From: Macrostomum lignano | Lineage: Eukaryota | Assembly: GCA_002269645.1 (NCBI GenBank) | Contig: NIVC01003280.1 | Location: forward strand, 1 to 64,000 | Length of the DNA: 64,000 nucleotides | Direction of reading: 5' to 3' | Part shown: positions 2,726-64,000 of the stretch, one piece after another | Layout: each line of letters starts with the position of its first letter | Numbering within the stretch: the stretch's first letter is position 1 | Program-made: the position numbers and the translations under genes | Notes under the pieces: model-generated | The model's input: only the letters and a program-made list of their open reading frames with translations | Databases searched by the model: none | What the model was told of the DNA's origin: nothing

Positions 2726-4008
<1,283 letters not shown>

Positions 4009-11100: not shown

Positions 11101-14100
11101 GTTTCCTTCCCTGACACTATTAGTGGTTTCCTTCCCTGACACTATTAGTGGTTTCCTTCCCTGACACTATTAGTGGTATCCTTCCCTGACACTATTAGTG
11201 GTTTCCTTCCCTGACACTATTAGTGGCATCTACCTGACACTATTAATGACATCTACCTGACACTATTAATGGCATCTACCTGACACTATTAATGGAATCT
11301 ACCTGACACTATTAGTGGCATCTACCTGACACTATTAATGGAATCTAACTGACACTATTAGTGGCATCTACCTGACACTATTAATGGCATCTACCTGACA
11401 CTATTAGTGGCATCTACCTGACACTATTAGTGGCATCTACCTGACACTATTAATGGAATCTACCTGACACTATTAGTGGCATCTACCTGACACTATTAGT
11501 GGCATCTACCTGACACTATTAATGGCATCTACCTGACACTATTAGTGGCATCTACCTGACACTATTAGTGGCATCTACCTGACACTATTAATGGCATCTA
11601 CCTGACACTATTAGTGGCATCTACCTGACACTATTAGTGGCATCTACCTGACACTATTAATGACATCTACCTGACACTGTTAATGGAATCTACCTGACAC
11701 TATTAATGACATCTACCTGACACTATTAATGGCATCTACCTGACACTATTAATGGAATCTACCTGACACTATTAGTGGCATCTACCTGACACTATTAATG
11801 GAATCTAACTGACACTGTTAATGGAATCTACCTGACACTATTAATGGCATCTACCTGACATTCTACCTGATGTCATTAATGGAATCTACCTGACACTGTT
11901 AATGGAATCTACCTGACACTGTTAATGGAATCTACCTGACACTATTAGTGGCATCTACCTGACACTATTAATGGCATCTACCTGACACTATTAATGGAAT
12001 CTAACTGACACTATTAGTGGCATCTACCTGACACTGTTAATGGAATCTACCTGACACTATTAATGACATCTACCTGACACTATTAATGGCATCTACCTGA
12101 CACTATTAATGGAATCTACCTGACACTATTAGTGGCATCTACCTGACACTATTAATGGAATCTACCTGACACTATTAATGACATCTACCTGACACTATTA
12201 ATGGCATCTACCTGACACTATTAATGGAATCTACCTGACACTATTAGTGGCATCTACCTGACACTATTAATGGAATCTACCTGACACTATTAATGACATC
12301 TACCTGACACTATTAATGGCATCTACCTGACACTATTAATGGAATCTACCTGACACTGTTAATGGAATCTACCTGACACTATTAGTGGCATCTACCTGAC
12401 ACTATTAATGGAATCTAACTGACACTATTAGTGGCATCTACCTGACACTATTAATGGAATCTAACTGACACTATTAATGGCATCTACCTGACACTATTAA
12501 TGGAATCTACCTGACACTATTAATGGCATCTACCTGACACTATTAGTGGCATCTACCTGACACTATTAATGGTATCTACCTGACACTATTAATGACATCT
12601 ACCTGACACTACCAACAATACCTACAAGCATATAAAAAGAGTACCAGAGCAAGCTCACCTGAAAGAAAGAAATATCACCGCCAAGAAGCTTGGCATTAAG
12701 CGTGACAGCGCAGGCTCCAACCCAGAACACGATGAACACCTGAGCAAACTGCGGACCTCCGTCGTTTGATCCGGCACTGGAGTGGCCTTGCAACAGGCTG
12801 CAAGTGTGTTTGGCGAACCACAGTTACTAAAGTACTATGATAGTGAAATTTTGTTTGCAGAGGAAAAAACAATAGGATTAAAACTTACGTTGCCAAAAAG
12901 GTGCAAAGGATCAACGGGCCCCAGAGGTCCCCTGGAAATAAAATGGAACATTGATTAATGCAAAATTTTGCATTTTCATTATCATAGATGCAAATTTCTC
13001 GTGTCTCACATCTCGCATTTCATCTCCCGGACGTTACATTAACCCTCAACTGTAGTCTCACATGTTTACCTGGCACCTCAACTAACACCTCCCGTATCTA
13101 CCTGACACCTGAACTGACATCTCCCGTATCTACCTGACACCTGAACTGACATCTCCCGTACCTACCTGACACCTCAACTAACACCTCCCGTATCTACCTG
13201 ACACCTGAACTGACATCTCCCGTATCTACCTGACACCTCAACTAACACCTCCCGTATCTACCTGACACCTGAACTGACATCTCCCGTATCTACCTGACAC
13301 CTCAACTGACATCTCCCGTATCTACCTGGCACCTCAACTAACACCTCCCGTATCTACCTGACACCTGAACTTACATCTCCTGTATCTACCTGACACCTGA
13401 ACTGACACCTCCCGTATCTACCTGACACCTGAACTGACATCTCCCGTATCTACCTGGCACCTGAACTGACATCTCCGGTATCTACCTGACACCTGAACTG
13501 ACATCTCCCGTATCTACTTGACACCTGAACTGACATCTCCCGTATCTACCTGACACCTGAACTGACATCTCCCGTGTCTACCTGACACCTGAACTGACAT
13601 CTCCCGAGTCTACCTGATACCTCAACTACAGTCTCACATGTTTACCTGACACCTCGGCTGACATCTACCGTGTCTACCAGACACATGAACTGACATCTCC
13701 CGTATCTACCTGACACATAAACTGACATCTCCCGAGTCTACCTGATACCTCAACTACAGTCTCACATGTTTACCTGACACCTGAACTGACATCTCCCGTA
13801 TCTACCTGACACCTGAACTGACATCTCCCGTGTCTACCAGACACCTGAACTGACATCTCCCGAGTCTACCTGATACCTCAACTACAGTCTCACATGTTTA
13901 CCTGACACCTCGGCTGACATCTACCGTGTCTACCAGACACATGAACTGACATCTCCCGTATCTACCTGACACATAAACTGACATCTCCCGAGTCTACCTG
14001 ATACCTCAACTACAGTCTCACATGTTTACCTGACACCTGAACTGACATCTCCCGTATCTACCTGACACCTGAACTGACATCTCCCGTGTCTACCAGACAC

Positions 14101-14886
14101 CTGAACTGACATCTCCCGAGTCTACCTGATACCTCAACTACAGTCTCACATGTTTACCTGACACCTCGGCTGACATCTACCGTGTCTACCAGACACATGA
14201 ACTGACATCTCCCGTATCTACCTGACACATAAACTGACATCTCCCGAGTCTACCTGATACCTCAACTACAGTCTCACATGTTTACCTGACACCTGAACTG
14301 ACATCTCCCGTATCTACCTGACACCTCAACTGACATCTCCCGCGTCTGACACCTCAAATGCAGTCTCACATTTTTACCTGACACCTGAACTGACATCTCC
14401 CGTGTCTACCTCACTCCTCAACTAAGATCTCCCGAGTCTACCTGGCACCTGAACTGATATCTCCCGTGTCTACCAGACACATGAACTGACATCTCCCGAG
14501 TCTACCTGGCACCTGAACTGATATCTCCCGTGTCTACCAGACACATGAACTGACATCTCCCGTGTCTACCTGACACCTCAACTGACATCTCCTGTGTCTC
14601 TTAAGTACTTAGCGTTCTACATGAGATATTTACACTAGCCTCTAATTAATATTGTCACTATAAACCACAGCCTACAGCAACAAAAAGAATAAGAATCGAA
14701 AAAAAGCTCACAATCTCTCAGCAGAGATTTGCTCGATCTTGGAATGAACACATGATAGAACTTAACACCAACTGCTTTCACATCTCTCAGTATAGTATCC
14801 TTAACAGGCTCGTCCAGGGTTGATGGATACAAGTTAGAGCCATTCAGTGGCACATTTGGCACATTGCTGGGCCCAGAGTTGGACAT
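8156..14886 (-). CDS. YIPF6: YIP1 family member 6; exons 14886-14712, 12931-12889, 12797-12659, 8416-8156; the original exon extends past a transposon insertion to ~18123
   Basis: STLDEPVKDTILRDVKAVGVKF...LLRD|WDLWGPLILCTFLAT|LLQ...DGGPQFAQVF...LNAKLLGGDISFFQ|AICVLGYCVLP...ASTAFLASSQPPNRKALAVYPVCLFYFVISWMIL. All GT-AG junctions are phase-consistent. The 43-nt and 261-nt exons are absent from the ORF track. Confidence 0.95.
8451..12610. repeat. 4.2-kb intronic minisatellite of interspersed 25-bp (CTGACACTATTAGTGGTATCCTTCC) and 23-bp (CTGACACTATTAGTGGCATCTAC / CTGACACTGTTAATGGAATCTAC) variants
   Basis: Fills YIPF6 intron 8417-12658. Confidence 0.97.
13055..14600. repeat. Intronic minisatellite, ~32-bp unit CTACCTGACACCTGAACTGACATCTCCCGTAT with higher-order variants
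   Basis: Fills YIPF6 intron 12932-14711; shares the CTACCTGACAC core with the 8451-12610 array. Confidence 0.95.
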
Positions 14887-22796: not shown

Positions 22797-25700
22797 ATGC
22801 CGTTGGTATTACGTGTTGTTATGCCACTGTTGCTGTGTGCATTGTGCTCCGACTGCCTGCCGGCTAGCAACAGCATGTACAGCCATCAGTCTGCGGACTG
22901 TGCCAGTGCCGACTTGGTGAGATGCTCGACATATTTTATCTATATTTGCGCGTATAAAACTATTCATGAAATTGGAAAAAATGATCAGCTGGTTCTACCA
23001 TAGATCCATAGATATCACTGGTTACATACATGTAGTGTTTGAGGTTAAAGAGGTTAAAGCAATATGTTGGAAGATACACTCCTCACTCCGTCACTCCCTC
23101 ACTCCGTCACTGCCGCACTCCGTCACTGCCTCACTCCGTCACTGCCTCACTCCGTCACTGCCTCACTCCGTCACTGCCTCACTCCGTCCCTGCCTCACTC
23201 CGTCACTCCCTCACTCCGTCACTGCCTCACTCCGTCACTGCCTCACTCCGTCCCTGCCTCACTCCGTCACTCCCTCACTCCGTCACTGCCGCACTCCGTC
23301 ACTGCCTCACTCCGTCACTGCCTCACTCCGTCACTGCCTCACTCCCTCACTCCGTCACTGCCTCACTCCGTCACTCCCTCACTCCGTCACTGCCGCACTC
23401 CGTCACTGCCTCACTCCGTCACTGCCTCATTCCCTCTCTCCGTCACTCCGTCCCTCAGTCATTCCGTCACTCCCCCAACCCGTCACTTCCTCACCCTGTC
23501 ACTCAGTCACTCCTTCATTCCCGCAAACTGTCACTGCCGAATATTGCTATAGCAAGACACAATCCCGAATGCAACTGCCCTGAGGCCTCGCATTGGTACT
23601 AAAAAAATATCCCAGAGCCGATTCTGGACTTCTCTGTTGGCGTACGAGGCTTAATTTTAATTGTCGTTACGCTAAAAACTTCGAAAATTACAGTTATTAA
23701 TTTAGCCTATCTTGATCTTTTTCTTTCGCTATATAAATTAGTTCGCTTCAATATACGCTCGCAGCAGTACAGTAGTCCTAGATGGTAGAAGCTTCATGCA
23801 GCTGTCATTCAATCATCGTCATTATAGTGCAGCAACATGTCATGGTCGCTAAAAAGTTTATCTACAGTAGTTGACTACAAAATTTCGTTAGCAGAAAACA
23901 GCTCGCGATTCAACTTAGTGGCTAAGCACTAAACACTGGGGGAGGGGGGTTCGGTCTTGTGTTTCCCACGTTCGGGCGAGCTGTGCCTGACAAAGAAGGC
24001 ATTATTTTATTCGGTGCAACAAACAAATGCATGTAAATGAAGACAAGGAACTGAGGAGGATATTTGGCGTCAGCCTGTCCCGCCGCCTCTCATCCCAGCA
24101 AAGATCCCAAGCAGAGATAGATTTCCCAATTGTCCCCACTCGCAACCAAGGGCTCCGGTTTTGTAGCTTCATGGACTGCTAATAAGGTACAATATGGATC
24201 GGAGGTCACTAGAGCAATTTTTGGGAACCATTCACAATGTATGAGTATTGAGTAAGTAAATAGGCAATGAATGGGATACTTTACAGCATTATAAATTATG
24301 TTTAGTAAGTAACTACTTTCACAACCCATGGACAAATAGAAGCTTAAAAATGCAGAAATTTCTCAGATTAAATAGTAGATTGTGTCTGTGGTTTTGGAGG
24401 CAGACAATGGTAGATTGTGTCGATGGTTTTGGAGGCAGACAATGGTAGATTGTGTCTATGGTTTTGGAGACAGACAATGGTAGATTGTGTCTATGGTTTT
24501 GGAGACAGACAATGGTAGATTGTGTCGATGGTTTTGGAGACAGACAATGGTAGATTGTGTCTATGGTTTTGGAGACAGACAATGGTAGATTGTGTCGATG
24601 GTTTTGGAGGCAGACAATGGTAGATTGTGTCTATGGTTTTGGAGACAGACAATGGTAGATTGTGTCTATGGTTTTGGAGACAGACAATGGTAGATTGTGT
24701 CTATGGTTTTGGAGACAGACAATGGTAGATTGTGTCTATGGTTTTGAGGCAGACAATGGTAGATTGTGTCTATGGTTTTGAGGCAGGCAATGGTAGATTG
24801 TGTCTATGGTTTTTGAGGCAGACAATGGTAGATTGTGTCTATGGTTTTGGAGACAGATAATGGTAGATTGTGTCTATGGTTTTGGAGACAGACAATGGTA
24901 GATTGTGTCTATGGTTTTGGAGGCAGACAATGGTAGATTGTGTCTATGGTTTTGGAGACAGACAATGGTAGATTGTGTCTATGGTTTTGAGGCAGGCAAT
25001 GGTAGATTGTGTCTATGGTTTTTGAGGCAGACAATGGTAGATTGTGTCTATGGTTTTGGAGACAGACAATGGTAGATTGTGTCTATGGTTTTGAGGCAGA
25101 CAATGGTAGATTGTGTCTATGGTTTTGGAGGCAGACAATGGTAGATTGTGTCTATGGTTTTTGAGGCAGACAATGGTAGATTGTGTCTATGGTTTTGGAG
25201 ACAGATAATGGTAGATTGTGTCTATGGTTTTGAGGCAGACAATGGTAGATTGTGTCTATGGTTTTGGAGGCAGACAATGGTAGATTGTGTCTATGGTTTT
25301 GGAGACAGACAATGGTAGATTGTGTCTATGGTTTTGAGGCAGACAATGGTATATTGTGTCTATGGTTTTGAGGCAGACAATGGTAGATTGTGTCTATGGT
25401 TTTGGAGGCAGACAATGGTAGATTGTGTCTATGGTTTTGGAGTCAGGCAATGGTAGATTGTGTCTATGGTTTTTGAGTCAGACAATGGTAGATTGTGTCT
25501 ATGGTTTTGGAGTCAGACAATGGTAGATTGTGTCTATGGTTTTGGAGTCAGACAATGGTAGATTGTGTCTATGGTTTTGGAGACAGACAATGGTAGATTG
25601 TGTCTATGGTTTTGGAGTCAGACAATGGTAGATTGTGTCTATGGTTTTGGAGACAGACAATGGTAGATTGTGTCTATGGTTTTGAGGCAGACAATGGTAG

Positions 25701-28700
25701 ATTGTGTCTATGGTTTTGAGGCAGACAATGGTAGATTGTGTCTATGGTTTTGGAGGCAGACAATGGTAGATTGTGTCTATGGTTTTGGAGTCAGACAATG
25801 GTAGATTGTGTCTATGGTTTTGGAGACAGACAATGGTAGATTGTGTCTATGGTTTTGGAGTCAGGCAATGGTAGATTGTGTCTATGGTTTTTGAGGCAGA
25901 CAATGGTAGATTGTGTCTATGGTTTTGGAGACAGACAAGGATTGATATTTCACGAGTAGAGAGAAGCCACTAATCTTGTCTATGACAAAACCATATACAC
26001 AAGCACATTGTCTCATGAATGTTGCGTTGAATAATGAGCCTAGATCCTAAGACAATGATCCATGCATGACAACATAAAATAAGTAATGAGTTGCTTTTTC
26101 TCAAAATTAAATATTAAATTAAATTCTACTAATATCCACCTTATTGTACCTGGTACATTGTTGACTGTTGCCTCCAGTCCAGATGCTTTGCGCCAGGAGT
26201 CCATGCTTCCTTTCCCACCGGACCGGATCCGGATATGACACTAATACTGCAGCAAAGCACACCCCATGTTATATTTCATATATAGTAAGCGAAGCCCTCA
26301 AAGTCTGTCTGTAAGCAGATTTTGAGACTAGTCTGAGAATTGATATTTAAAGAAGAATTAGTGCGACGATTACATTAGAAAGGGGCCGGTGTGTCTGACC
26401 CCCCCCCACCTTGACAAGCATGACAAGACAAATTAACAACATGTAGTCATGCCAGTCCTAGAGCAGACAGGGTGGAAGCGAGAGCAGAATCTGAGAAATG
26501 CTTAATACTCGCACAGTTTATATGGTGACGGTTGTTAAACAGTGAGGCAGTAAAATGAGTAATTTTGTACCGTAAAATCAATATCAAATTTTCATAAACT
26601 ATAAATTATCACAGACCTGAAATATCACAGACCTGAAATATCACAAACCTGAAATATCACAAACCTGAAATATCACAAACCTGAAATATCACAGACCTGA
26701 AATATCACAAACCTGAAATATCACAAACCTGAAATATCACAAACCTGAAATATCACAGACCTGAAATATCACAGACCTGAAATATCACAAACCTGAAATA
26801 TCACAAACCTGAAATATCACAAACCCGAAATATCACAAACCTGAAATATCACAAACCCGAAATATCACAAACCTGAAATATCACAAACCGGAAATATCAC
26901 GGACCTGAAATATCACAGACCTGAAATATCACAGACCTGAAATATCACAAACCTGAAATATCACAGACCTGAAATATCACAAACCCGAAATATCACAAAC
27001 CTGAAATATCACAAACCCGAAATATCACAGACCTGAAATATCACAGACCTGAAATATCACAAACCTGAAATATCACAGACCTGAAATATCACAGACCTGA
27101 AATATCACAAACCTGAAATATCACAGACCTGAAATATCACAAACCCGAAATATCACAGACCTGAAATATCACAAACCTGAAATATCACAGACCTGAATAT
27201 CACAGACCTGAAATATCACAGACCTGAAATATCACAAACCTGAAATATCACAAACCCGAAATATCACAGACCTGAAATATCACAGACCTGAAATATCACA
27301 GACCTGAAATATCACAAACCCGAAATATCACAGACCTGAAATATCACAGACCTGAAATATCACAGACCTGAAATATCACAAACCTGAAATATCACAAACC
27401 CGAAATATCACAAACCCGAAATATCACAAACCCGAAACATCTCAAACCCGAAATGCGAGCTATCATAACTCCGAAAAGCAAAATACCGTTGGGTGTTGCT
27501 GGAACTTTCGGAGTTATTTGAGCAAAAGACTGAAAAAAACAGAGCGAAAACACATATCAGCCACGTGTTGCATCGCAAGTTTTCCATTCTGAAGCAACTA
27601 CAATCTCTTTCTTGCACCCACATGCCACTGTCCCGGAAAAGATCGACAGTTATGGCGTGTTCTGCGCGTTATTTTGCATCACGTGCTCTAACTTAAAAGA
27701 AAGGTAAAAGTAAATTATGCTGCAGATTTTATGCTGCTGATTAAACAACAGATCAAACTCCGGTGTAAACTGCAGTTGACTCTTTAAGCACAGCACAGAT
27801 TTCATCGATTAGATCTGCTCCTACACAAACCTCAGCAGCGAACGGAAATGAATTCACGACAGATGCCCTAACCCCCAACCTTGCTCTCCTTCAGACCCAG
27901 CACGGGCTTGGCACAGTGTCCAGGCACGCGGAAATGTGCAGCGAAATGCCTGGTAAGCCAGCGCGATTTCAATAACATGATTTTTTGTATTGAGGGTCAA
28001 ATTTGTTAAAGGGAAAGTGGCTGGGGGTAGCCAGCAGCAGCACTTCAATGCGTTAATCCAGGTTTTAAGCATCGGATTATGCCTGACTTTATCGATAAGC
28101 TCGATCTAAAAGTAATCTAGGCAAGGGTCAGCACTCTCCACAGCTTCACTGTATAACTGCTCAGAGCCAGCTGCTCAAATGCACAGCTCGAATGCACAGC
28201 TCAAAGGCACAGCTCAAAAGCACTCTCTCACAGCCTCCCTGTACAACTGCTCAGAGCCTGCTGCTCAAATGCACTCTCCCACAGCCTCCCTGTACAACTG
28301 CTCAGAGCCAGCTGCTCAAATGCACTCTCCCACAGCCTCCCTGTACAACTGCTCAGAGCCAGCTGCTCAAATGCACTCTCCCACAGCCTCTCTGTACAAC
28401 TGCTCAGAGCCAGCTGCTCAAATGCACTCTCCCACAGCCTCCCTGTACAACCGCTCAGAGCCAGCTGCTCAAATGCACTCTCCCACAGCCTCTCTGTACA
28501 GCTGCTCAGAGCCAGCTGCTCAAATGCACTCTCCCACAGCCTCCCTGTACAACTGCTCAGAGCCAGCTGCTCAAATGCACTCTCCCACAGCCTCTCTGTA
28601 CAACTGCTCAGAGCCAGCTGCTCAAATGCACTCTCCCACAGCCTCCCTGTACAACCGCTCAGAGCCAGCTGCTCAAATGCACTCTCCCACAGCCTCTCTG

Positions 28701-30953
28701 TACAGCTGCTCAGAGCCAGCTGCTCAAATGCACTCTCCCACAGCCTCCCTGTACAACTGCTCAGAGCCAGCTGCTCAAATGCACTCTCCCACAGCCTCCC
28801 TGTACAACCGCTCAGAGCCAGCTGCTCAAATGCACTCTCCCACAGCCTCTCTGTACAGCTGCTCAGAGCCAGCTGCTCAAATGCACTCTCCCACAGCCTC
28901 CCTGTACAACTGCTCAGAGCCAGCTGCTCAAATGCACTCTCCCACAGCCTCCCTGTACAACTACAGCGTGCAGACGGCTCAGTCAGCTGACAGCCTTCAG
29001 AGCACCGAGTTCTCAGACACTGCCAGCGGCCTTATTATCGGCTCCTTCGAGCTGGAGCACTGCCTGACTCCGTCAGACTCGCTGCTCATCGTTCTGGGCG
29101 AAGCCTCCGACTCGATGGGCGCCTCTGAGCACAGATGTCGGAGGCTGACCATCTGCAACCAGATGGCCGACGGGAAGCGGCGACGACTGCGGCTTCAACT
29201 GAGCCTCCATCCGACCAGATCCTACACGATGAAGGTCTTCAAGCTGGCCAGCGGGTCCAGGCTGTGCGAGCAGCCCCGAGTTCGATTCTTCTTCACCAGG
29301 TCGGCGGGCGACGACCGGCCGCTGGTGCAGCTGGCGGCGCGACGCTGCGGCGCCTGCGGTGACGATGGCAGCGACTTCCGCTGCAACATGACGGCCTACC
29401 TGCGGAGCGGCTGGGTTGGCGGGCTGCTGCTAAAGCTGACCGGAGTTTTAGGCGATCAAAGTGACTGGATCAAATTTCCGGCCAATCAGAGTCAGCGGGT
29501 GTCGGTGAGCTCACGGAGACCGTTTTGGGCGAGCAAACGGCGGGAGTAATGATTTAGTACGACTCACGTAGAATACTATAGCATTAAAATACTGTATTTT
29601 TTGCTTAAGGCAGCCTTCCAGTTTCGCAAAACTGCCGGATCGAGACGGACGATTTCCAGTGCAAGGCGAAGCATCTTTTCATTAGGATTCAATGGTAATC
29701 CACTCTGTGATTGACCTCATTGACACTGTGATTGACATCACCGACACTTTGATTGACCTCACCGACACTGTGATTGACTTCACCGACACTCTGATTGACC
29801 TCACCGACACTCTGTGATTGACCTCACCGACACTCTGATTGACCTCACCGACACTCTGTGATTGACCTCACCGACACTCTGTGATTGACCTCACCGACCC
29901 TTTGATTGACCTTAACGACACTGTGATTGGCCTCACCGACACTCTGTGATTGACCTCACCGACACTCTGATTGACCTCACCGACACTCTGATTGACCTCA
30001 CCGACACTCTGATTGACCTCACCGACACTCTGATTGACCTTAACGGTGATTGACCTCACCGACACTCTGTGATTGATCTCAATGACACTCCAAATTCCTC
30101 TGACTAATTATTTACAGACAAGTCGCTCCGCTCGCCGACCCTCTGTCAGCCCTCTGAGCCGCTGGCAGTCTGCCCGAGGCCGCTGTTGCCGCCGACAGTG
30201 GGCCAGTGGAGCGCGCCTTCGCCCTCCCAGTCGGCCAGAGGGTCTGTCAATCGATCAACAATCAGCGACACAGCGCCCGCAGTTTTAAGCTGGGCGCTTC
30301 CTCCGGCGCTAGTCCTGGCGCTCTTCCTGGCGCTCTACCGGGCGCTCTATGCTCAGCGCAATTGCGGCGCCTGCGGCGATAGCAACACGAGAAAACTTGT
30401 CCTGCTAGTGCTTCCAGAAGCCGGAAATCCAACGACCCGTCAGCTTATTCGCCGGCTGCCAGCGGCCCCGGCCGGAGTCGAGATACGTCAGGTGGTCGGC
30501 CTGAGCAAGCTCAACCGACAGCTAATTGGCAGCTCGTGCCTCGTCATCTTCCTGAGCTGGGACTCAAAGTTCGACAGCTTCCAAGCTGGCAGCCTGTCGG
30601 ATGCAGCCAGGCGGAGTCTGAGAACGGCGCTGCTGACTGAGAAGCACCGGATGCTGGGAGCCTTCATCAACTCGGGAGCCGGACCGCCTGCTGACTCGAT
30701 CTGGTCCGGCCTCGATGCCAGGATGCTGAGACTGGACGATGAAGCGGCTTGGAGAGATCTGCTGCTGGAGTTATTTGAGCAAAAGACTGAAAAAAACAGA
30801 GCGAAAACACATATCAGCCACGTGTTGCATCGCAAGTTTTCCATTCTGAAGCAACTACAATCTCTTTCTTGCACCCACATGCCACTGTCCCGGAAAAGAT
30901 CGACAGTTATGGCGTGTTCTGCGCGTTATTTTGCATCACGTGCTCTAACTTAA
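22797..30953 (+). CDS. Type I membrane receptor-like protein with TIR/SEFIR-like tail (IL-17-receptor-like architecture), copy A; exons 22797-22916, ~28974-29504, 29622-29694, 30118-30953
   Basis: Signal-peptide-like exon (MPLVLRVVMPLLLCALC, donor TTG|GTGAGA); Cys-containing ectodomain exon; phase 0/0/1 junctions consistent; TM LSWALPPALVLALFLALY; tail RKLVLLVLP...GVEIRQV...RQLIGSSCLVIFLS resembles the SEFIR betaA-alphaA-betaB-betaC pattern. Linkage of exon 1 and the domain identity are inferred. Confidence 0.6.
23080..23530. repeat. Low-complexity 8/16-bp repeat CTCACTCCGTCACTGC
   Basis: Source of three overlapping repeat ORFs. Confidence 0.9.
24375..25940. repeat. Minisatellite, 34-35 bp unit GGAGACAGACAATGGTAGATTGTGTCTATGGTTTT
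   Basis: About 45 copies. Confidence 0.97.
26610..27450. repeat. Minisatellite, 16-bp unit GAAATATCACA(A/G)ACCT
   Basis: About 50 copies. Confidence 0.97.
28140..28965. repeat. 42-bp minisatellite (CTGCTCAGAGCCAGCTGCTCAAATGCACTCTCCCACAGCCTC-type) abutting the ectodomain exon; duplicated at ~31396-32221
   Basis: About 19 copies, open in frame with the following exon. Confidence 0.95.
29705..30090. repeat. Intronic 19-21 bp minisatellite GATTGACCTCACCGACACTCT; duplicated at ~33285-33670
   Basis: Fills the intron between exons 3 and 4 of the receptor. Confidence 0.92.
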
Positions 30954-32229
30954 AAGAAAGGTAAAAGTAAATTATGCTGCAGATTTTATGCTGCTGATTA
31001 AACAACAGATCAAACTCCGGTGTAAACTGCAGTTGACTCTTTAAGCACAGCACAGATTTCATCGATTAGATCTGCTCCTACACAAACCTCAGCAGCGAAC
31101 GGAAATGAATTCACGACAGATGCCCTAACCCCCAACCTTGCTCTCCTTCAGACCCAGCACGGGCTTGGCACAGTGTCCAGGCACGCGGAAATGTGCAGCG
31201 AAATGCCTGGTAAGCCAGCGCGATTTCAATAACATGATTTTTTGTATTGAGGGTCAAATTTGTTAAAGGGAAAGTGGCTGGGGTAGCCAGCAGCAGCACT
31301 TCAATGCGTTAATCCAGGTTTTAAGCATCGGATTATGCCTGACTTTATCGATAAGCTCGATCTAAAAGTAATCTAGGCAAGGGTCAGCACTCTCCACAGC
31401 TTCACTGTATAACTGCTCAGAGCCAGCTGCTCAAATGCACAGCTCGAATGCACAGCTCAAAGGCACAGCTCAAAAGCACTCTCTCACAGCCTCCCTGTAC
31501 AACTGCTCAGAGCCTGCTGCTCAAATGCACTCTCCCACAGCCTCCCTGTACAACTGCTCAGAGCCAGCTGCTCAAATGCACTCTCCCACAGCCTCCCTGT
31601 ACAACTGCTCAGAGCCAGCTGCTCAAATGCACTCTCCCACAGCCTCTCTGTACAACTGCTCAGAGCCAGCTGCTCAAATGCACTCTCCCACAGCCTCCCT
31701 GTACAACCGCTCAGAGCCAGCTGCTCAAATGCACTCTCCCACAGCCTCTCTGTACAGCTGCTCAGAGCCAGCTGCTCAAATGCACTCTCCCACAGCCTCC
31801 CTGTACAACTGCTCAGAGCCAGCTGCTCAAATGCACTCTCCCACAGCCTCTCTGTACAACTGCTCAGAGCCAGCTGCTCAAATGCACTCTCCCACAGCCT
31901 CCCTGTACAACCGCTCAGAGCCAGCTGCTCAAATGCACTCTCCCACAGCCTCTCTGTACAGCTGCTCAGAGCCAGCTGCTCAAATGCACTCTCCCACAGC
32001 CTCCCTGTACAACTGCTCAGAGCCAGCTGCTCAAATGCACTCTCCCACAGCCTCCCTGTACAACCGCTCAGAGCCAGCTGCTCAAATGCACTCTCCCACA
32101 GCCTCTCTGTACAGCTGCTCAGAGCCAGCTGCTCAAATGCACTCTCCCACAGCCTCCCTGTACAACTGCTCAGAGCCAGCTGCTCAAATGCACTCTCCCA
32201 CAGCCTCCCTGTACAACTACAGCGTGCAG

Positions 32230-34359
32230 ACGGCTCAGTCAGCTGACAGCCTTCAGAGCACCGAGTTCTCAGACACTGCCAGCGGCCTTATTATCGGCTC
32301 CTTCGAGCTGGAGCACTGCCTGACTCCGTCAGACTCGCTGCTCATCGTTCTGGGCGAAGCCTCCGACTCGATGGGCGCCTCTGAGCACAGATGTCGGAGG
32401 CTGACCATCTGCAACCAGATGGCCGACGGGAAGCGGCGACGACTGCGGCTTCAACTGAGCCTCCATCCGACCAGATCCTACACGATGAAGGTCTTCAAGC
32501 TGGCCAGCGGGTCCAGGCTGTGCGAGCAGCCCCGAGTTCGATTCTTCTTCACCAGGTCGGCGGGCGACGACCGGCCGCTGGTGCAGCTGGCGGCGCGACG
32601 CTGCGGCGCCTGCGGTGACGATGGCAGCGACTTCCGCTGCAACATGACGGCCTACCTGCGGAGCGGCTGGGTTGGCGGGCTGCTGCTAAAGCTGACCGGA
32701 GTTTTAGGCGATCAAAGTGACTGGATCAAATTTCCGGCCAATCAGAGTCAGCGGGTGTCGGTGAGCTCACGGAGACCGTTTTGGGCGAGCAAACGGCGGG
32801 AGTAATGATTTAGTACGACTCACGTAGAATACTATAGCATTAAAATACTGTATTTTTTGCTTAAGGCAGCCTTCAAAGATTCTAAGAAACGAAATATTCT
32901 AGCCTTCTAAGATTTTCTAAGACACTATATGTTGCAGTCTTGAAAATTTTTATAAGAAAATAAATGTTGCAGTCTTGAAATATTTTCTAAGAAACGAAAT
33001 GTTTTGACTCAAATGCAAATTTAAATTTAAACTAACTTCTTAAATTGCTGCAGAATTCAAACAGTTGGATTAAGGCAAACCTCTCCATGCAGATCCGAAG
33101 CTGGCAGCTCACCTATCATGTGAGTAATGTTTTTAATAATTTGTAACACAGCTGAGCATATTTCGTAGAACTCAGAGCCTTCCAATTTAATTTCAATCCA
33201 GTTTCGCAAAACTGCCGGATCGAGACGGACGATTTCCAGTGCAAGGCGAAGCATCTTTTCATTAGGATTCAATGGTAATCCACTCTGTGATTGACCTCAT
33301 TGACACTGTGATTGACATCACCGACACTTTGATTGACCTCACCGACACTGTGATTGACTTCACCGACACTCTGATTGACCTCACCGACACTCTGTGATTG
33401 ACCTCACCGACACTCTGATTGACCTCACCGACACTCTGTGATTGACCTCACCGACACTCTGTGATTGACCTCACCGACCCTTTGATTGACCTTAACGACA
33501 CTGTGATTGGCCTCACCGACACTCTGTGATTGACCTCACCGACACTCTGATTGACCTCACCGACACTCTGATTGACCTCACCGACACTCTGATTGACCTC
33601 ACCGACACTCTGATTGACCTTAACGGTGATTGACCTCACCGACACTCTGTGATTGATCTCAATGACACTCCAAATTCCTCTGACTAATTATTTACAGACA
33701 AGTCGCTCCGCTCGCCGACCCTCTGTCAGCCCTCTGAGCCGCTGGCAGTCTGCCCGAGGCCGCTGTTGCCGCCGACAGTGGGCCAGTGGAGCGCGCCTTC
33801 GCCCTCCCAGTCGGCCAGAGGGTCTGTCAATCGATCAACAATCAGCGACACAGCGCCCGCAGTTTTAAGCTGGGCGCTTCCTCCGGCGCTAGTCCTGGCG
33901 CTCTTCCTGGCGCTCTACCGGGCGCTCTATGCTCAGCGCAATTGCGGCGCCTGCGGCGATAGCAACACGAGAAAACTTGTCCTGCTAGTGCTTCCAGAAG
34001 CCGGAAATCCAACGACCCGTCAGCTTATTCGCCGGCTGCCAGCGGCCCCGGCCGGAGTCGAGATACGTCAGGTGGTCGGCCTGAGCAAGCTCAACCGACA
34101 GCTAATTGGCAGCTCGTGCCTCGTCATCTTCCTGAGCTGGGACTCAAAGTTCGACAGCTTCCAAGCTGGCAGCCTGTCGGATGCAGCCAGGCGGAGTCTG
34201 AGAACGGCGCTGCTGACTGAGAAGCACCGGATGCTGGGAGCCTTCATCAACTCGGGAGCCGGACCGCCTGCTGACTCGATCTGGTCCGGCCTCGATGCCA
34301 GGATGCTGAGACTGGACGATGAAGCGGCTTGGAGAGATCTGCTGCTCCAGGCTGCTTGA
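32230..34359 (+). CDS. Receptor copy B: duplicated exons ~32230-32760, 33202-33274, 33698-34359 with the original short C-terminus ...AAWRDLLLQAA*
   Basis: Exon sequences match copy A; intact acceptors and donors; no signal-peptide exon of its own within the duplicated unit. Confidence 0.6.
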
Positions 34360-37452: not shown

Positions 37453-38414
37453 GGAGGGACTCCCGCCACCGCCAGAGGCATCGTTATCGCTGTCATGACT
37501 TCCTCTTCTTTTCCCGGCAATTTAGAAGATTCAGATTGTTCTTCCATTTCATTTTGAGTAATTATATTTCCAATAACTTTGCTTGGCACTTTAAAACTAG
37601 TATAGCATTGCTATTTTGGTCTCAGGCCACTTTAATGTACATGTTAATTTAAATTAGGGCAGACAGCTAAAGAAGGGCCAGGGCCAGTCTTCCCCAGGCC
37701 ACTGATATCGATCGTTTTGGGATGGAGTAGAGGGGACCATTTTTTGCTTGGTCATTTTTTACAAAAAACAGCCCCAGGCAAAGCACTGCTGGATGCGCAG
37801 TTTAGTTATACTTATTGTTCTGTGGCTGGCGCTGCCCTGCAACATCATTCCGAGAAGAACATTTCTTGGAAATAAACCCAAATACACTAAAAAAATTTTT
37901 TTCACTGCGCCATAGCAGCGTAGACTGAACCACGGACGGAGACAGTAAATGATTGTACATTTGCATGTACACACCGGACAGAAATGTATACGTACATCGA
38001 ACCATTCATTTCTAGTTTACTCGCCAATTAGAGTTTATAATTATAGCCGACAATTGGTTGAGGTCAGCATAAAATAACATACATATATTCGAATATTAGA
38101 AACCAAAATTTAATTATTACGAGCCTATCTATACTGATAAGCAATCCTCATTTTTCAGTAAGTTCCAGTTAACAAATTAAATCGAAAAGATTTTGCTCTT
38201 CGAAATGAGGCGAACGCGAAAGCAAGCCAAGAGAAAATCTGCCAATTCTTCTGGCAAGACTTCGTCTCAATCTCCATCATCGCTGCAGCTAGTGAGTTCC
38301 ATTGTATATGATATCCACTTGTACGATTTCCAGAAATTTTCCGAAAAATTACATGTACACTGTAATATGGGTCACTTTTCCACCCTTTGACACTCTTAAT
38401 CATCATTTGCCACC

Positions 38415-40460
38415 TTTTCCCACCCTCTCTCCCACTCTTTACTCACCCTCTCTCCCACTCTTTACTCACCCTCTCTCCCACTCTTTTCCCACACTCTCTC
38501 CCACTCTTTTCCCACCCTCTCTCCCACTCTTTTCCCACCCTCTCTCCCACTCTTTTCCCACCCTCTCTCCCACTCTTTTCCCACCCTCTGTCCCACTCTT
38601 TTCCCACCCTCTCTCCCACTCTTTTCCCACCCTCTCTCCCACTCTTTTCCCACCCTCTCTCCCACTCTTTTCCCACCCTCTCTCCCACTCTTTTCCCACC
38701 CTCTCTCCCACTCTTTTCCCACCCTCTCTCCCACTCTTTTCCCACCCTCTCTCCCACTCTTTACTCACCCTCTCTCCCACTCTTTTCCCACCCTCTCTCC
38801 CACTCTTTTCCCACCCTCTCTCCCACTCTTTTCCCACCCTCTCTCCCACTCTTTTCCCACCTCTCTCCCACTCTTTTCCCACCCTCTCTCCCACTCTTTA
38901 CTCACCCTCTCTCCCACTCTTTTCCCACCCTCTCTCCCACTCTTTTCCCACCCTCTCTCCCACTCTTTACTCACCCTCTCTCCCACTCTTTTCCCACCCT
39001 CTCTCCCACTCTTTTCCCACCCTCTCTCCCACTCTTTTCCCACCCTCTCTCCCACTCTTTTCCCACCCTCTCTCCCACTCTTTACTCACCCTCTCTCCCA
39101 CTCTTTTCCCACCCTCTCTCCCACTCTTTTCCCACCCTCTCTCCCACTCTTTTCCCACCCTCTCTCCCACTCTTTACTCACCCTCTCTCCCACTCTTTTC
39201 CCACCCTCTCTCCCACTCTTTTCCCACCCTCTCTCCCACTCTTTTCCCACCCTCTCTCCCACTCTTTTCCCACCCTCTCTCCCACTCTTTTCCCACCCTC
39301 TCTCCCACTCTTTACTCACCCTCTCTCCCACTCTTTACTCACCCTCTCTCCCACTCTTTACTCACCCTCTCTCCCACTCTTTTCCCACCCTCTCTCCCAC
39401 TCTTTTCCCACCCTCTCTCCCACTCTTTTCCCACCCTCTCTCCCACTCTTTTCCCACCCTCTCTCCCACTCTTTTCCCACCCTCTCTCCCACTCTTTTCC
39501 CACCCTCTCTCCCACTCTTTTCCCACCCTCTCTCCCACTCTTTTCCCACCCTCTCTCCCACTCTTTACTCACCCTCTCTCCCACTCTTTTCCCACCCTCT
39601 CTCCCACTCTTTTCCCACACTCTCTCCCACTCTTTTCCCACCCTCTCTCCCACTCTTTTCCCACCCTCTCTCCCACTCTTTTCCCACCCTCTCTCCCACT
39701 CTTTACTCACCCTCTCTCCCACTCTTTTCCCACCCTCTCTCCCACTCTTTTCCCACCCTCTCTCCCACTCTTTACTCACCCTCTCTCCCACTCTTTTCCC
39801 ACCCTCTCTCCCACTCTTTTCCCACCCTCTCTCCCACTCTTTACTCACCCTCTCTCCCACTCTTTTCCCACCCTCTCTCCCACTCTTTTCCCACCCTCTC
39901 TCCCACTCTTTTCCCACCCTCTCTCCACTCTTTTCCCACCCTCTCTCCCACTCTTTTCCCACCCTCTCTCCCACTCTTTTCCCACCCTCTCTCCCACTCT
40001 TTACTCACCCTCTCTCCAACTCTTTACTCACCCTCTCTCCCACTCTTTTCCCACCCTCTCTCCCACTCTTTTCCCACCCTCTCTCCCACTCTTTTCCCAC
40101 CCTCTCTCCCACTCTTTTCCCACCCTCTCTCCCACTCTTTTCCCACCCTCTCTCCCACTCTTTTCCCACCCTCTCTCCCACTCTTTTCCCACCCTCTCTC
40201 CCACTCTTTTCCCACCCTCTCTCCCACTCTTTACCCACCCTCTCTCCCACTCTTTTCCCACCCTCTCTCCCACTCTTTTCCCACCCTCTCCCACTCTTCT
40301 TACCGTCTCTCCCACTATTTTCCCACCTTCTAAAACTCTTTTCGCACCCTCTCTCCCACTCTTTTCCCACCCTCTCCCACTCTTCTTACCGTCTCTCCCA
40401 CTATTTTCCCACCTTTTTAAACTCTTTTCGCACCCTCTCTCCCACTCTTTTTCCCACTCT
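38415..40460. repeat. 2-kb polypyrimidine minisatellite, 23-bp unit CCACCCTCTCTCCCACTCTTTTC
   Basis: About 85 copies; source of the 792-aa and 648-aa ORFs and many KEWERG ORFs. Confidence 0.97.
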
Positions 40461-40574
40461 TTCCGTTCCTCTAAGTAATTCAAGACTTGCCATTTTTTTA
40501 AGAGTGGAGCATTTATTTCAGTCTTATTTCTTTTACTACAGGCGGAGACCACCGCTGCGCCACCTTCGAGCGAC

Positions 40575-45365
<4,791 letters not shown>

Positions 45366-46905: not shown

Positions 46906-47354
46906 ACACATCGAAATTTTCAAAGAAATCGACACTCAAATCGGCAAAAATTCCGCCACGGAGCAGCGGAGCATGGCAAAAAAATAACAAAGAACACTTG
47001 CTCTCCTACCGAAAATATTTTAATTGTATTGTTTTATATCAAACCAAATATATATTATACACTTAACGAATGCTGTGATGTAAAAAAACAAAATACTTTT
47101 ATATTTTTTATTTAAAGTTAAAAAGAACGTTACGGCGACAGTTCTCTATTTATGACAGTATAAATGAGTCAAATGACAGCTAGTGTGAGTGACAGCTATA
47201 ATGTCCGTGTATTGATAGCATCGCTAAAATAACGTGCAAGCCCATAAAGGTGTAAGACGTAATCATCATTCATACGTTAGCTTTTAGTTATGTTTAATAG
47301 CTGTCTACGACAGGCGATTGAATAAGGAGAAAAGACTGAGAAACATGAGGGAGA

Positions 47355-61777: not shown

Positions 61778-64000
61778 TCACCGTGAAACATCCTCATTGA
61801 AAATCATATTAGCCAAATCGCTAGACAATATCTTTAGCGCTGCCTCGTCATCATCCAGCTTCTTGGCCTCGAAACCCGACCAGGCCAAGTTCGCTGGCAG
61901 ATCGTCAGTCTTCTCGTTGACGAAGATTCCTTGAAATCGATGCTTCTCAGTTAGCAAGAGGGTTGTCAAGCTGTGCCTGGATCCATCTGAGAGGGTGTCG
62001 ATCTGCAATAAGGGAAATAAAAACGATTACAGGTCTTTCTCGTTGTCCTTGTCTGTCATTTGCTATTGAAGTTTTCCATCCGACAGTACAAGGACCACTA
62101 GGAACACTTCGTTATATAAGGACGTTACACTCTCGATTCGTGTAAAAATAGTTGAAGGCCGATTTTCGTTCTCGTATACATTATTATAATATTAGAGGAG
62201 AAAGACTTTAAAGCATAAAGACCAAATTATGCGGGTTCTGTATATGATGTTCACTCTGATATATTTTCAGAAACGTCACAAAATTTTGCATTCACATAAA
62301 TGTGCGTAAGATTTTCAGCTACTTATTAATTTTACTTTCTAAACTTGAAGATTTGGATAGCTACCAGACGCCCAAAAATAGGGTGTCTCCATTGTACAGG
62401 ATTTTCTTGCATCTATACATCTAGTGGGAAACTAAACTAACTGGTTTACTTGGTAGTAGGGGACAAAAATCTGAACAATTTGGCGAAAAAATCAACATTC
62501 TACATGCAATCGATTCGGAGATACAGGCATTTAAACAATCGGCCTTCAACTGTTTTTGCACGATTTGCAAGTGTTTCAAGTCTAGTAGTCCTTGCGACGG
62601 TAACCATGAAGTACATGTAAGTTCCCTTTGAATTTGTTCTGAATCAGTTTCCCTGCTAGATAATTTGACATTATTTGAGTTTCCATGCCCGTACATGTAC
62701 ATCTGGGAAGAATCGATGCGAGAGAAAATTATAACACCCATGTACTTGCCCGAAAGCTATCAAAAGCCGAATCGGCGCTCATAAACACGACAAGATTCGA
62801 ACTTCCGACCAATTGTCGCGTCAGACTTTGCAGACCAACAACCTTTACCACCTCGACGCCAGCGGCAGCCGCTGTCAGCGCGTGCTGGAACCGCCGCACA
62901 GTTGTCCGGCTAATGGCGTTGACATTTTCCAGTTCGGGCAGCACTAGGAGAATGAGCTTCCGTGCATTTCTCAGCCGACGATGACAGTACACGATCAGCA
63001 TCAATACTGACACTGGCACTAGCAATACTGCGACAAACACCAGCAAAATTACGGTTGTAGCAAATGTTTCAACTCTGTCAGCATAATCAGTTTGGTCCAG
63101 GGACATCGGCTTAGCCGGACAAAGTTTGCAGCTATCGAATAGAGCCTCCTCAAGATGGCAAAGCTGCGGATGAAGCAGCTTCTCTGCCGAGCCGTCTGCG
63201 TTACGTTTGCAGGGGATTAGCGTTAATCCATTAGGTTGTATGAGTTGAAATATTGAATTCCTCCCACTAAAAGACTCACCTGACCCGCGGATTGCGAAAA
63301 ACATTCGCCTACTCGTACAGCATTTTCGACTGCTATTTGCAAACCTTGGACGAAACTGAAAATCAAAATTGGCAATGATTGGCATTCGAAAACCTACTCT
63401 AAAAGAACCATTTTTACGTGAAAGAAACGTGAGACAGGTACACACATCAATCCGAATGAGAAGGCCAGCGGCAGGTGATATTCGAACTACGACCGACTGT
63501 TTGACCCACAGATTGCGTCTCTGAAGCCAACATGAGTGCGATTGGATGTACAATCGGTTGGGTGGAATTGAAAAGCTTTTTTGAGCGAGATAATTTCCGA
63601 GTTAATACGCTCGTGCGAGCACTTACATAAAAAATATCTGAGACATTCTGGAGATACTGCACCAAATCAACGGTGCTACTATAAAAAGCTACCCGCACCA
63701 GGAGCCTTGATGGACTCACCATTTTGTCGCTGAACTCGTAGCTGTCAGCGCTCCAAACAGACGGTTCATTCAGAGTCAGGCGCAGCCCGCCAACCCAGCC
63801 GCTCCGCAGGTAGGCCGTCATGTTGCAGCGGAAGTCGCTGCCATCGTCACCGCAGGCGCCGCAGCGTCGCGCCGCCAGCTGCACCAGCGGCCGGTCGTCG
63901 CCCGCCGACCTGGTGAAGAAGAATCGAACTCGGGGCTGCTCGCACAGCCTGGACCCGCTGGCCAGCTTGAAGACCTTCATCGTGTAGGATCTGGTCGGAC
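61778..64000 (-). CDS. Diverged paralog of the TIR/SEFIR-like receptor, 5' part outside the window; exons >64000-63720, 63355-63280, 63195-62750, 62002-61778
   Basis: Same exon phases (0, 1) as copies A/B; FRPRF...SRRMFFAI exon matches FRKTA...ARRSIFSL; TM TVILLVFVAVLLVPVSVLMLIVY; tail RKLILLVLP...GVEVVKVVGLQSLTRQLVGSSNLVVFMS...LLTEKHRFQGIF aligns with copies A/B. Confidence 0.7.

Follow-up and report, generated by a model that had tools for sequence, protein, structure and literature searches.

Part of a gene of Macrostomum lignano is repeated head to tail, almost without a difference, in the window, by which we mean the whole 64,000-nucleotide stretch analysed here (contig NIVC01003280.1 of the Mlig_3_7 draft assembly). 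The duplication is confirmed as a sequence feature of the contig. Judging from the letters of the contig, it is best explained, with a probability that we put at roughly 0.55, as a real partial duplication with recruitment of very recent date, a type of event already known, at a lineage-restricted orphan M. lignano gene that would encode a single-pass type-I membrane protein. Self-BLAST and direct comparison of the window with itself delimit the two copies, and sequence comparison of the copies locates the other two elements:

27510..30766, forward strand: copy A of the block, proximal to exon 1 (3257 nt)
30767..34346, forward strand: copy B of the block (3580 nt)
30766..30767, forward strand: duplication junction, inside a Leu codon (CT/G)
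32875..33198, forward strand: 324-nt segment found in B only, its placement ambiguous by the dinucleotide TC

Once a homopolymer G and the 324-nt segment are removed, all aligned bases of the two copies match (3256/3256), and this identity extends through two internal minisatellite arrays (51-nt x14.7 and 21-nt x18). The only two differences are the length of the homopolymer (GGGGG in A, positions 28023-28027, vs GGGG in B) and the 324-nt segment, which is deleted in A and has 2-nt (TC) microhomology at its edges. The repeat unit comprises only part of the ancestral transcription unit: it excludes exon 1 (22797-22916) at one end and, at the other, everything from 34347 onward, namely the last codons, the stop and the 3' flank. 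Copy A is without a native stop codon and 3' end; copy B leads directly to the last native codons, followed by the stop and the 3' flank. The breakpoint splits the Leu codon between its second and third bases, four codons upstream of the TGA at 34357-34359, where ...GATCTGCTGCT is followed directly by GGAGTTATTTGAG... The join is blunt, with no microhomology and zero bases in common with the flanks on either side, and the unique sequence around it lies at least 258 nt from the nearest minisatellite at the right boundary and 55 nt at the left. The first-pass annotation had placed the breakpoint four codons before the stop and had described a block with the ectodomain, linker and TM-plus-tail exons and without the signal-peptide exon; direct comparison bears out the former, and self-BLAST and the exon model agree on the latter.

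The exons, and the stretch that copy A has acquired at its end, are as follows:

22797..22916, forward strand: exon 1, start codon and signal-peptide-like segment (MPLVLRVVMPLLLCALCSDC...ADL), from sequence and hydropathy
27895..27952, forward strand: exon 2 of copy A (58 nt, TQHGLGTVSRHAEMCSEMP), phase 0 to 1, identical to 31152-31209
31152..31209, forward strand: exon 2 of copy B, in which the deposited CDS P0001 begins at the internal ATG 31191
28948..29504, forward strand: exon 3 (ectodomain) of copy A, 557 nt, from the exon model
32204..32760, forward strand: exon 3 (ectodomain) of copy B, from the exon model, which reproduces P0001 exactly
33054..33119, forward strand: exon 4, a 66-nt in-frame cassette (NSNSWIKANLSMQIRSWQLTYH) in B only, present in P0001 and P0002
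29622..29694, forward strand: exon 5 (linker) of copy A (73 nt, FRKTAGSRRTISSARRSIFSLGFN), from the exon model
33202..33274, forward strand: exon 5 (linker) of copy B, from the exon model
30118..30953, forward strand: exon 6 of copy A, with TM, cytoplasmic alpha/beta domain and read-through tail, ending in TAA 30951-30953
33698..34359, forward strand: exon 6 of copy B, with TM and a cytoplasmic domain of ~130 aa, native end ...RDLLLQAA and TGA 34357-34359
30768..30950, forward strand: 61 recruited codons (ELFEQKTEKNRAK...RALT), the same sequence as intron-1 DNA 27511-27693

Exon 1 opens with the ATG at 22797 and ends in phase 0, its donor GTGAGA following position 22916. All exon phases in the model are compatible, and the splice sites fit the M. 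lignano consensus GT[G/A]AG / CAG (PMC8629364), except for the exon 5 donor (GTAAT). The exon 3 acceptor of copy A lies inside the last unit of the 51-nt minisatellite. Exon 4 sits within the 324-nt segment that copy A lacks, and the deletion reconstitutes the exon 5 acceptor of copy A as ccttccag.

The databases hold only two proteins of this locus, P0001, the model deposited on this contig, and P0002, both of the B type with the cassette exon; neither has the chimeric tail, and no protein or model without the cassette is found there. The deposited annotation places a gene on copy B only and leaves both exon 1 and copy A unannotated. P0002, whose source sequence differs from the window by 1-nt indels, is the only model that connects exon 1 with exon 2 and the remainder. 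The earlier gene model needs amending: it had missed the 58-nt exon 2 inside the block, which the deposited model has, as well as the 66-nt cassette exon. It had also started the ectodomain exon at 28974 and 32230, 26 nt downstream of the deposited starts (28948 and 32204), and the direct junctions from exon 1 to those positions give way in the deposited model to a path through exon 2 and the acceptor at 32204.

Because the breakpoint lies inside that Leu codon, upstream of the stop, the last exon of copy A is open for 61 further codons. The codon at the junction becomes CTG, still Leu, and the frame stays open from 30768 to 30950 until the TAA at 30951-30953, the whole of 30768-30953 repeating intron-1 positions 27511-27696. 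Thus the breakpoint is inside the terminal coding exon and the reading frame is completed from formerly non-coding DNA. Translation confirms the 61-aa basic tail reported by the first-pass annotation (pI 10.7; 12 K/R vs 3 D/E). The phrase "domain-tail formation" claims too much, for the tail is a short basic extension that matches no Pfam family and is not a domain. No protein with the chimeric tail occurs among 5.8 billion clustered sequences or 1.84 billion representatives. In the non-satellite DNA of the window, a frame would stay open for 61 codons or more by chance with a probability of ~0.03-0.04; the run is mildly lucky and unremarkable.

The 324-nt difference implies two physically distinct sequences in the sequenced DNA, most simply paralogues. 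Mlig_3_7 is, however, a Canu assembly of PacBio CLR data in which REAPR scored only 63.95% of bases as error-free and found 872 within-contig coverage errors (PMC5730564), and it was later judged error-prone, with variants wrongly expanded (PMC10733133). With these documented error rates, a same-molecule artefact deserves consideration: the genome would hold one copy, and the consensus or layout step would have appended the overlapping stretch twice, through an uncollapsed overlap or a mis-placed Canu read, with the 324-nt difference being a segregating or erroneous indel. Complete identity through two fast-mutating minisatellite arrays, a sole small difference of the homopolymer kind typical of PacBio consensus error, a blunt junction without microhomology and a ring of minisatellites, which disturb read placement, are all in keeping with this account, as are the single deposited gene model and the fact that P0002 passes through exons 1-6 once, with the B-type cassette. 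The deletion in A is clean, though, with 2-nt microhomology and a working acceptor kept, so that an artefact would need a second real variant despite an inbred line with negligible within-subgenome heterozygosity. Furthermore, the junction lies in unique sequence outside the repeats, and no N gap separates the copies (the window has no Ns at all), whereas such gaps are typical in false duplications (PMC9516828). We regard the artefact as less likely than a real duplication but quite possible.

Another way for an assembly to create such a pair is a mis-join of haplotypes or homeologues (heterotypes), in which A and B would be alleles, or haplovariants S, L1 and L2, placed in tandem. The DV1 line carries three haplovariants, variants were wrongly expanded in the assembly (PMC10733133), and one large indel tells the copies apart. 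The haplovariants differ by 1.39-2.41%, however, with negligible heterozygosity within subgenomes (PMC10733133), which would give 45-78 substitutions in 3256 nt where there are 0, and the copies adjoin without a gap. Given zero substitutions against that divergence, A and B are not mis-joined homeologues; the mis-join, named by the first-pass annotation as the scenario that would refute the duplication, is largely excluded and in our estimate highly improbable.

Under the preferred reading, that of a real partial duplication with recruitment, the 3.3-3.6 kb block (exons 2-6 minus the last four codons) would have been duplicated in tandem very recently by a blunt non-homologous join, and the 324-nt deletion, later or in the same event, would have taken the in-frame cassette exon from the proximal copy. 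Copy A would retain the promoter and exon 1; with its stop codon and 3' end gone, its terminal exon is completed in the DNA by 61 former intron-1 codons. Copy B would keep the native end at a distance of 8.2 kb from exon 1. The main mRNA is probably of the B type, exon 1 - 2 - 3 - 4 - 5 - 6B, and its exons 2 and 3 may derive from either copy because they are identical in A and B. Exon 6A, with its acceptor present and its native poly(A) context absent, would be skipped or enter a minor isoform in which the last helix of the cytoplasmic domain stays intact and is followed by the basic tail.

Whether both bodies are used is a separate matter. That the duplication is real and that, in addition, copy A is expressed from the shared exon 1 or forms an operon-like trans-splicing pair with B seems rather improbable from the sequence. 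If exon 1 were spliced to A, to B or to mixtures of both, receptor isoforms could result with or without the cassette and with the native or the new end. We consider such isoform use unlikely, and give the same low credence to the joint proposal that the 61-aa tail already modifies signalling. The frames would permit E1-A2-A3-A5-A6 as a 547-aa ORF beside the 511 aa of E1-B2..B6, and an A3 to B2 path as an in-frame double-ectodomain protein of 716 aa; the A5 to B2 and cryptic-donor paths, in contrast, run into premature stops. The hexamers AGTAAA and ATTAAA follow the new stop at 13 and 44 nt, yet both also stand in intron 1 (27709 and 27740), and there they evidently fail to end the transcript if exon 1 joins exon 2. 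A natural C-terminal extension exists in the diverged paralogue described below; against use of the new one, no database protein or model has the tail or lacks the cassette exon, and an allele at 0 substitutions is too young to have been shaped by selection, copy A having had no time for it.

A single primary transcript could also cover both copies in an operon-like manner, with A ended near its new stop and B SL trans-spliced; this strikes us as improbable, as does its corollary, an SL cap at the exon-2B acceptor and an SL-initiated product without signal peptide. SL trans-splicing affects 30-39% of the genes in M. lignano; the leader has ATG as its last three bases, and the acceptors used in trans follow the motif [T/C]TNCAG (PMC5730564, PMC8629364). 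The exon-2 acceptor CTTCAG/ACC is in phase 0, so that the ATG of the SL would be in frame, and the deposited CDS begins inside exon 2B with exon 1 absent. This 5' truncation is, however, equally well explained if reads multi-map between exons 2A and 2B, which are identical; exon 1 is connected to exon 2 in P0002, and a product lacking the signal peptide is implausible for a type-I protein with N-glycosylation sequons.

The predicted protein has the layout of a single-pass type-I molecule, with hydropathy peaks in the full model at aa 3-21 (signal peptide) and 346-364 (TM) and five N-x-S/T sequons, every one before the TM, the linkage of exon 1 coming from P0002 alone. The ectodomain contains Cys and is all-beta-looking (model pLDDT 39.7), and no LRR, Ig or FN3 signature was found. 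No relatives were found among 1.84 billion representatives. The 197-aa exon product has no Pfam match at E<=1, the isolated cytoplasmic domains of B and of the paralogue have none at E<=10 (TIR PF01582/PF13676 and SEFIR PF08357 included), and neither a single sequence nor a 2-sequence profile gave a sequence match in the PDB. The label "TIR/SEFIR-like" of the first-pass annotation thus finds no support from Pfam or PDB sequence matches, and what speaks for it is a low-confidence AlphaFold model of the cytoplasmic domain (mean pLDDT 56.5, pTM 0.49) with weak Foldseek matches (E 3e-3 to 5e-2, TM 0.5-0.57). The top ones are TIR domains (SPARTA, SpbK, RPS4/RRS1, MyD88, BtpA, SARM1), joined among the best by nucleoside deoxyribosyltransferases, CheY-like receivers and one SEFIR chain (9ot1_S of the IL-17RA/RB/ACT1 assembly, rank 16, E 2.3e-2, TM 0.54), the CheY-like receivers and deoxyribosyltransferases scoring like the rest. 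The model suggests that the cytoplasmic alpha/beta domain may be TIR-like.

A relative of the gene lies near the end of the window, where sequence comparison gives two features:

61780..64000, reverse strand: diverged inverted paralogue C, extending past the window end
63782..63999, reverse strand: 218-nt patch of paralogue C, 100% identical to 29210-29427 and 32466-32683

The exons of paralogue C are the 3' part of the ectodomain exon, the linker (homologous to exon 5, with the same phases), TM plus tail, and the last exon. Between C and B the cytoplasmic domain shows 56% identity, with dN/dS of about 0.13 at saturated dS, and by this comparison the domain is under purifying selection. It is a real coding domain, since it is conserved in C at that ratio. 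Paralogue C runs ~10 residues beyond the end point of B, so that some C-terminal extension is natural in the family. The 218-nt patch is bordered by a mismatch at base 64000 on one side and by diverged sequence on the other.

The locus thus defines an orphan, Macrostomum-restricted family of membrane proteins with a constrained cytoplasmic alpha/beta domain that is maybe TIR-like and, as such, relevant to the search for innate-immune receptors of flatworms. If real, the duplication is an unusually fresh case of partial duplication with recruitment, with no substitution yet, by the route behind fog-2 and Hun. If copy A is also expressed, the same orphan receptor would come with either of two cytoplasmic ends, its 22-aa extracellular cassette present or absent; under that reading, or the operon-like one, a new C-terminus would be caught at zero divergence while it is being recruited from an intron, in a model open to transgenesis. 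Transgenesis and RNAi are available in the host flatworm, making the splicing and polyadenylation of a just-duplicated exon block directly addressable. If the duplication is an artefact, it is a useful warning to check apparent gains of exon blocks in Mlig_3_7 at read level before interpreting them in evolutionary terms.

The TIR/SEFIR (STIR) receptors (TLR, IL-1R, IL-17R) have the same layout as this protein, with signal peptide, ectodomain, one TM and a ~130-aa cytoplasmic alpha/beta domain directly adjoining the membrane, and the predicted order of elements, b-a-b-a-b-a-b-b-a, counts as a further likeness; unlike those families, the protein is an orphan without a profile match even at E<=10. 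The false duplications in draft assemblies described by Ko et al. (2022), for which read depth and k-mers are the defining criteria (PMC9516828), resemble the present case: in an unphased draft built from long reads of a polyploid, a partial gene copy sits next to its near-identical counterpart and creates an apparent gene gain. Our case differs in having no gap, no haplotype-level divergence and one clean structural difference.

As in mutually exclusive exon systems, an exon block is here tandem-duplicated within one transcription unit, so that a choice is possible in principle. Such tandem duplication of exons or exon blocks is a source of alternative splicing, including mutually exclusive exons. 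Unlike in those systems, the copies are identical except for one cassette exon and the last codons, and the block contains the terminal exon, so that a choice would require alternative polyadenylation as well as splicing.

New gene ends are well known to arise by partial duplication. The class was defined by Katju and includes fog-2 from ftr-1 in C. elegans and Hun from Ballchen in Drosophila, with a recruited non-coding stretch of ~33 aa in Hun (PMC3449122). As in that class, the duplication is partial and ends in the terminal exon, the reading frame of the truncated copy is completed by neighbouring non-coding DNA (61 codons vs the ~33 aa of Hun), and the copies are tandem and very young. 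In contrast to fog-2 and Hun, the truncated copy is promoter-proximal and lies within the parent transcription unit, so that one exon 1 is common to both copies and there are no separate genes, and the added codons come from intron 1 of the same gene.

Self-alignment of the window revealed a head-to-tail duplication of an exon block, with the two copies directly abutting, downstream of an exon that the duplication does not include.

Features of the locus and examples of minisatellite arrays in the window
22797-22916 (+): signal-peptide-like exon 1, outside the duplicated block
27510-30766 (+): copy A, the proximal copy of the block
30767-34346 (+): copy B, the distal copy of the block
61780-64000 (-): paralogue C, a diverged, inverted paralogue of the same gene
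8450-12611, 13056-14599, 24371-25938, 26607-27454, 38410-40457, 45554-46906, 50535-51850: minisatellite arrays

Two differences separate the copies: a single G within the G-run 28023-28027 and a 324-nt segment (32875-33198) found in B only. With these set aside, direct comparison gives identity at 3256 of 3256 positions, including arrays of 51-nt (x14.7) and 21-nt (x18) units. The two copies meet at a blunt junction (...CTGCTGCT/GGAGTTATT...) with 0 shared bases, and the breakpoint falls inside a Leu codon, four codons ahead of the native TGA (34357-34359). Past the junction, the frame of copy A stays open over 30768-30950, adding 61 aa (ELFEQKTEKNRAK...RALT; pI 10.7; 12 K/R vs 3 D/E) before a TAA at 30951-30953. 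This tail is encoded by intron-1 DNA, the same as 27511-27693, and the chance probability of so long an open run is ~0.03-0.04 in the non-satellite DNA of the window. Self-alignment and frame reading thus bear out the duplication, breakpoint and read-through tail described in the first-pass annotation.

Because the junction lacks homology, NAHR between repeats was ruled out as the duplication mechanism. The 324-nt difference is most likely explained by a deletion in A, given that no target-site duplication flanks the segment and that both database gene models use an exon within it; on the same grounds, a transposon insertion in B was rejected. The segment missing from A has 2-nt microhomology at its edges, and without it the linker exon still has a good acceptor (ccttccag/).

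The first-pass annotation had itself contemplated a haplotype mis-join, in which A and B are haplovariants placed in tandem. The three M. lignano haplovariants differ by 1.39-2.41% SNPs, with negligible within-variant heterozygosity (PMC10733133), and this reading is nearly excluded because such divergence predicts 45-78 differences in the block, whereas 0 were seen. Furthermore, the copies adjoin without a gap, and false duplications typically show gaps (PMC9516828). A same-molecule consensus or layout artefact would fit the perfect identity, which extends to the minisatellite arrays, the homopolymer-length difference between the copies, the blunt junction and the minisatellite-rich surroundings in an assembly known as error-prone. 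GCA_002269645.1 is the Macrostomum lignano assembly Mlig_3_7 (several papers), for which PacBio CLR, Illumina and 454 data of the DV1 line were assembled using Canu and SSPACE, and REAPR scored 63.95% of its bases as error-free (PMC5730564). However, the clean difference of 324 nt means that the sequenced DNA contained two distinct sequences, which in an inbred line are more simply paralogues than alleles, and the sequence at the junction is unique; we regard such an artefact as less likely than a true duplication. From the sequence, we put the probability that the duplication is real at roughly 0.65.

Minisatellite arrays, with 16-51-nt units in up to about 180 copies, make up a large share of the window. 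They produce long spurious ORFs, such as 38302-40680, whose 792 aa consist of SLPLFSHPLSHSFPTLSPTLFPP repeats, and skew strand composition to an extreme degree, with a GC skew of -0.88 at 38-40 kb. Within or beside an annotated zf-CCCH gene (start 38205) lies a 229-aa ORF (41654-42343, +) with homeodomain-like/paired-box-type HTH matches (HTH_23, HTH_29, PAX; E 3e-7 to 8e-5) that resemble the N-terminus of Tc1/mariner-type transposases.

The copy B protein is recorded as gene 31191-34359 on NIVC01003280.1 (107,339 nt), GCA_002269645.1, the GenBank annotation of which is transcript-based (StringTie/TACO/TBONE; PMC5730564); positions in the window and on this contig are the same. This deposited protein, P0001, is reproduced exactly by exons 31191-31209, 32204-32760, 33054-33119, 33202-33274 and 33698-34359. 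Another database protein, P0002 (714 aa), which was traced to no contig, aligns to the window exon by exon, with exon 1 joined to the complete exon 2 of 58 nt (31152-31209 or 27895-27952) and then to the exons that follow. The 1-nt frame offsets relative to the window in its upstream exons indicate that P0002 derives from a slightly different sequence; upstream ORFs are also fused in, and it is therefore probably an ab initio model. At its 3' end, P0002 uses an alternative exon 0.9 kb downstream (donor 34283/34284, ATCTG/GTCCGG; acceptor 35179/35180), which swaps the last 25 aa for CYHYKISY and a stop. The same donor inside the last coding exon is present in copy A (30703).

Mapping of the two proteins shows that the exon set of the first-pass annotation was incomplete: it lacked exon 2, inside the duplicated block, and an in-frame 66-nt cassette exon (NSNSWIKANLSMQIRSWQLTYH) within the B-only segment. 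It also placed the acceptor of the ectodomain exon at 32230/28974, which is in frame with exon 1 yet used by neither deposited model; the exon starts at 32204/28948, in the last unit of a 51-nt minisatellite. The splice sites match the M. lignano consensus GT[G/A]AG / CAG, with the sole exception of the exon 5 donor (GTAAT). No in-frame ATG was found 5' of 31191 in unspliced DNA, so the start of P0001 is uninformative on the exact 5' end of the transcript. The ectodomain exon is preceded by the 51-nt minisatellite (28212-28962 and 31468-32218), which reads open in the frame of that exon; every unit encodes 17 aa (ASLYNCSEPAAQMHSPT) and supplies both a CAG acceptor and one N-C-S sequon. The acceptor annotated for the ectodomain is simply that of the last unit; the acceptors of other units, if used, would give ectodomains of variable length. 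On the opposite strand of B, a 71-aa ORF (33057-33272, -) with no known match, probably a chance occurrence, overlies cassette exon 4, the intron and the linker exon.

Splice paths were enumerated from the window sequence, with exons denoted by copy and number and exon 1 as E1. The path E1-A2-A3-A5-A6 is predicted to give a protein of 547 aa that ends in the new tail, and E1-B2...B6 the native protein of 511 aa; joining A3 to B2 would give an in-frame product of 716 aa with two ectodomains. Splicing to B2 from A5 or from the cryptic exon-6 donor (30703) leads to a premature stop, in the latter case an immediate TGA. The terminal exon of copy A is without the native poly(A) context; the hexamers AGTAAA and ATTAAA lie 13 and 44 nt past its new stop, and the same hexamers occur in intron 1 (27709 and 27740). 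The B-only exon 4 is present in both database proteins and the tail in neither, and no gene is annotated on exon 1 or copy A. We infer that B-type mRNA is the main product, with the A-tail isoform absent or minor, the annotation being weak evidence on isoform use because reads multi-map between identical exons.

In M. lignano, SL trans-splicing affects 38.8% of the genes (PMC5730564); ATG forms the end of the SL, and trans-acceptors resemble [T/C]TNCAG (PMC8629364). Because the exon 2 acceptor (CTTCAG/) is in phase 0, trans-splicing at this site would yield an in-frame, SL-capped copy-B mRNA, compatible with the start of P0001 inside exon 2B; we rate this reading low, however, since its product would be without a signal peptide. 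Rfam returned no match anywhere in the window, and no spliced-leader gene was found in it.

In the full B-type model, which is 511 aa long, hydropathy peaks at aa 3-21 and again at aa 346-364, and 5 N-glycosylation sequons all lie ahead of the TM segment; the layout is type-I single-pass. The motif CGACGD appears twice in this model, in the ectodomain (aa 193-198, RRCGACGDDGS) and on the cytoplasmic side, immediately past the membrane (aa 374-379, RNCGACGDSNT; window about 32590-32619 and 33931-33969, respectively).

By sequence comparison, the B-type protein is an orphan. Among 5.8 billion clustered proteins, it matched its own cluster (P0001 and P0002) only, and HMMER against 1.84 billion representatives recovered only the protein itself. 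Pfam yielded no family for the ectodomain, the tails or the new 61-aa tail, the sole exception being a sub-threshold DUF7767 match for paralogue C, and no meaningful match came from sequence searches of the PDB. Used as queries, the 2-sequence tail alignment and the paralogue-C exon returned no match, not even to P0001, which we read as word-index insensitivity and not as evidence of absence. The proposed TIR/SEFIR-like identity of the receptor thus failed at the sequence level, with neither a Pfam family nor a PDB sequence match. An AlphaFold model of the cytoplasmic domain, built on a 2-sequence alignment, has the order b-a-b-a-b-a-b-b-a at a mean pLDDT of 56.5. The best Foldseek matches of this low-confidence model are TIR domains (SPARTA, SpbK, RPS4/RRS1, MyD88, BtpA, SARM1), together with nucleoside deoxyribosyltransferases, one SEFIR-complex chain and CheY-like receivers (E 3e-3 to 5e-2, TM 0.5-0.57, none at E<=1e-3). 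The TIR/SEFIR-like assignment is a reasonable lead, with the CheY-like and deoxyribosyltransferase matches scoring alike. The ectodomain model (pLDDT 39.7) was unusable and hence left out of the fold search.

Paralogue C, which continues past the window end and was found in none of the protein collections searched, has the same linker exon as B, in the same phases, and its cytoplasmic domain shares 56% aa identity with that of B. Comparison of B with C gives a dN of 0.39, a saturated dS and a dN/dS of ~0.13; the cytoplasmic domain is therefore a genuine, constrained coding domain. A 218-nt patch of C (63782-63999) is 100% identical to A (29210-29427) and B (32466-32683) and stops abruptly mid-exon, base 64000 already being a mismatch; its appearance suggests a short tract of gene conversion, or else cross-polishing of one paralogue with another.

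The anatomy of this locus matches partial duplication with recruitment, in which the duplication ends in a terminal exon and the ORF of the truncated copy is completed from adjacent non-coding DNA; examples of the class are fog-2/ftr-1 and Hun/Ballchen (PMC3449122). If real, the duplication would be a further case of this known class, particular in its zero divergence between copies and in that the truncated copy lies within the parental transcription unit and shares exon 1.
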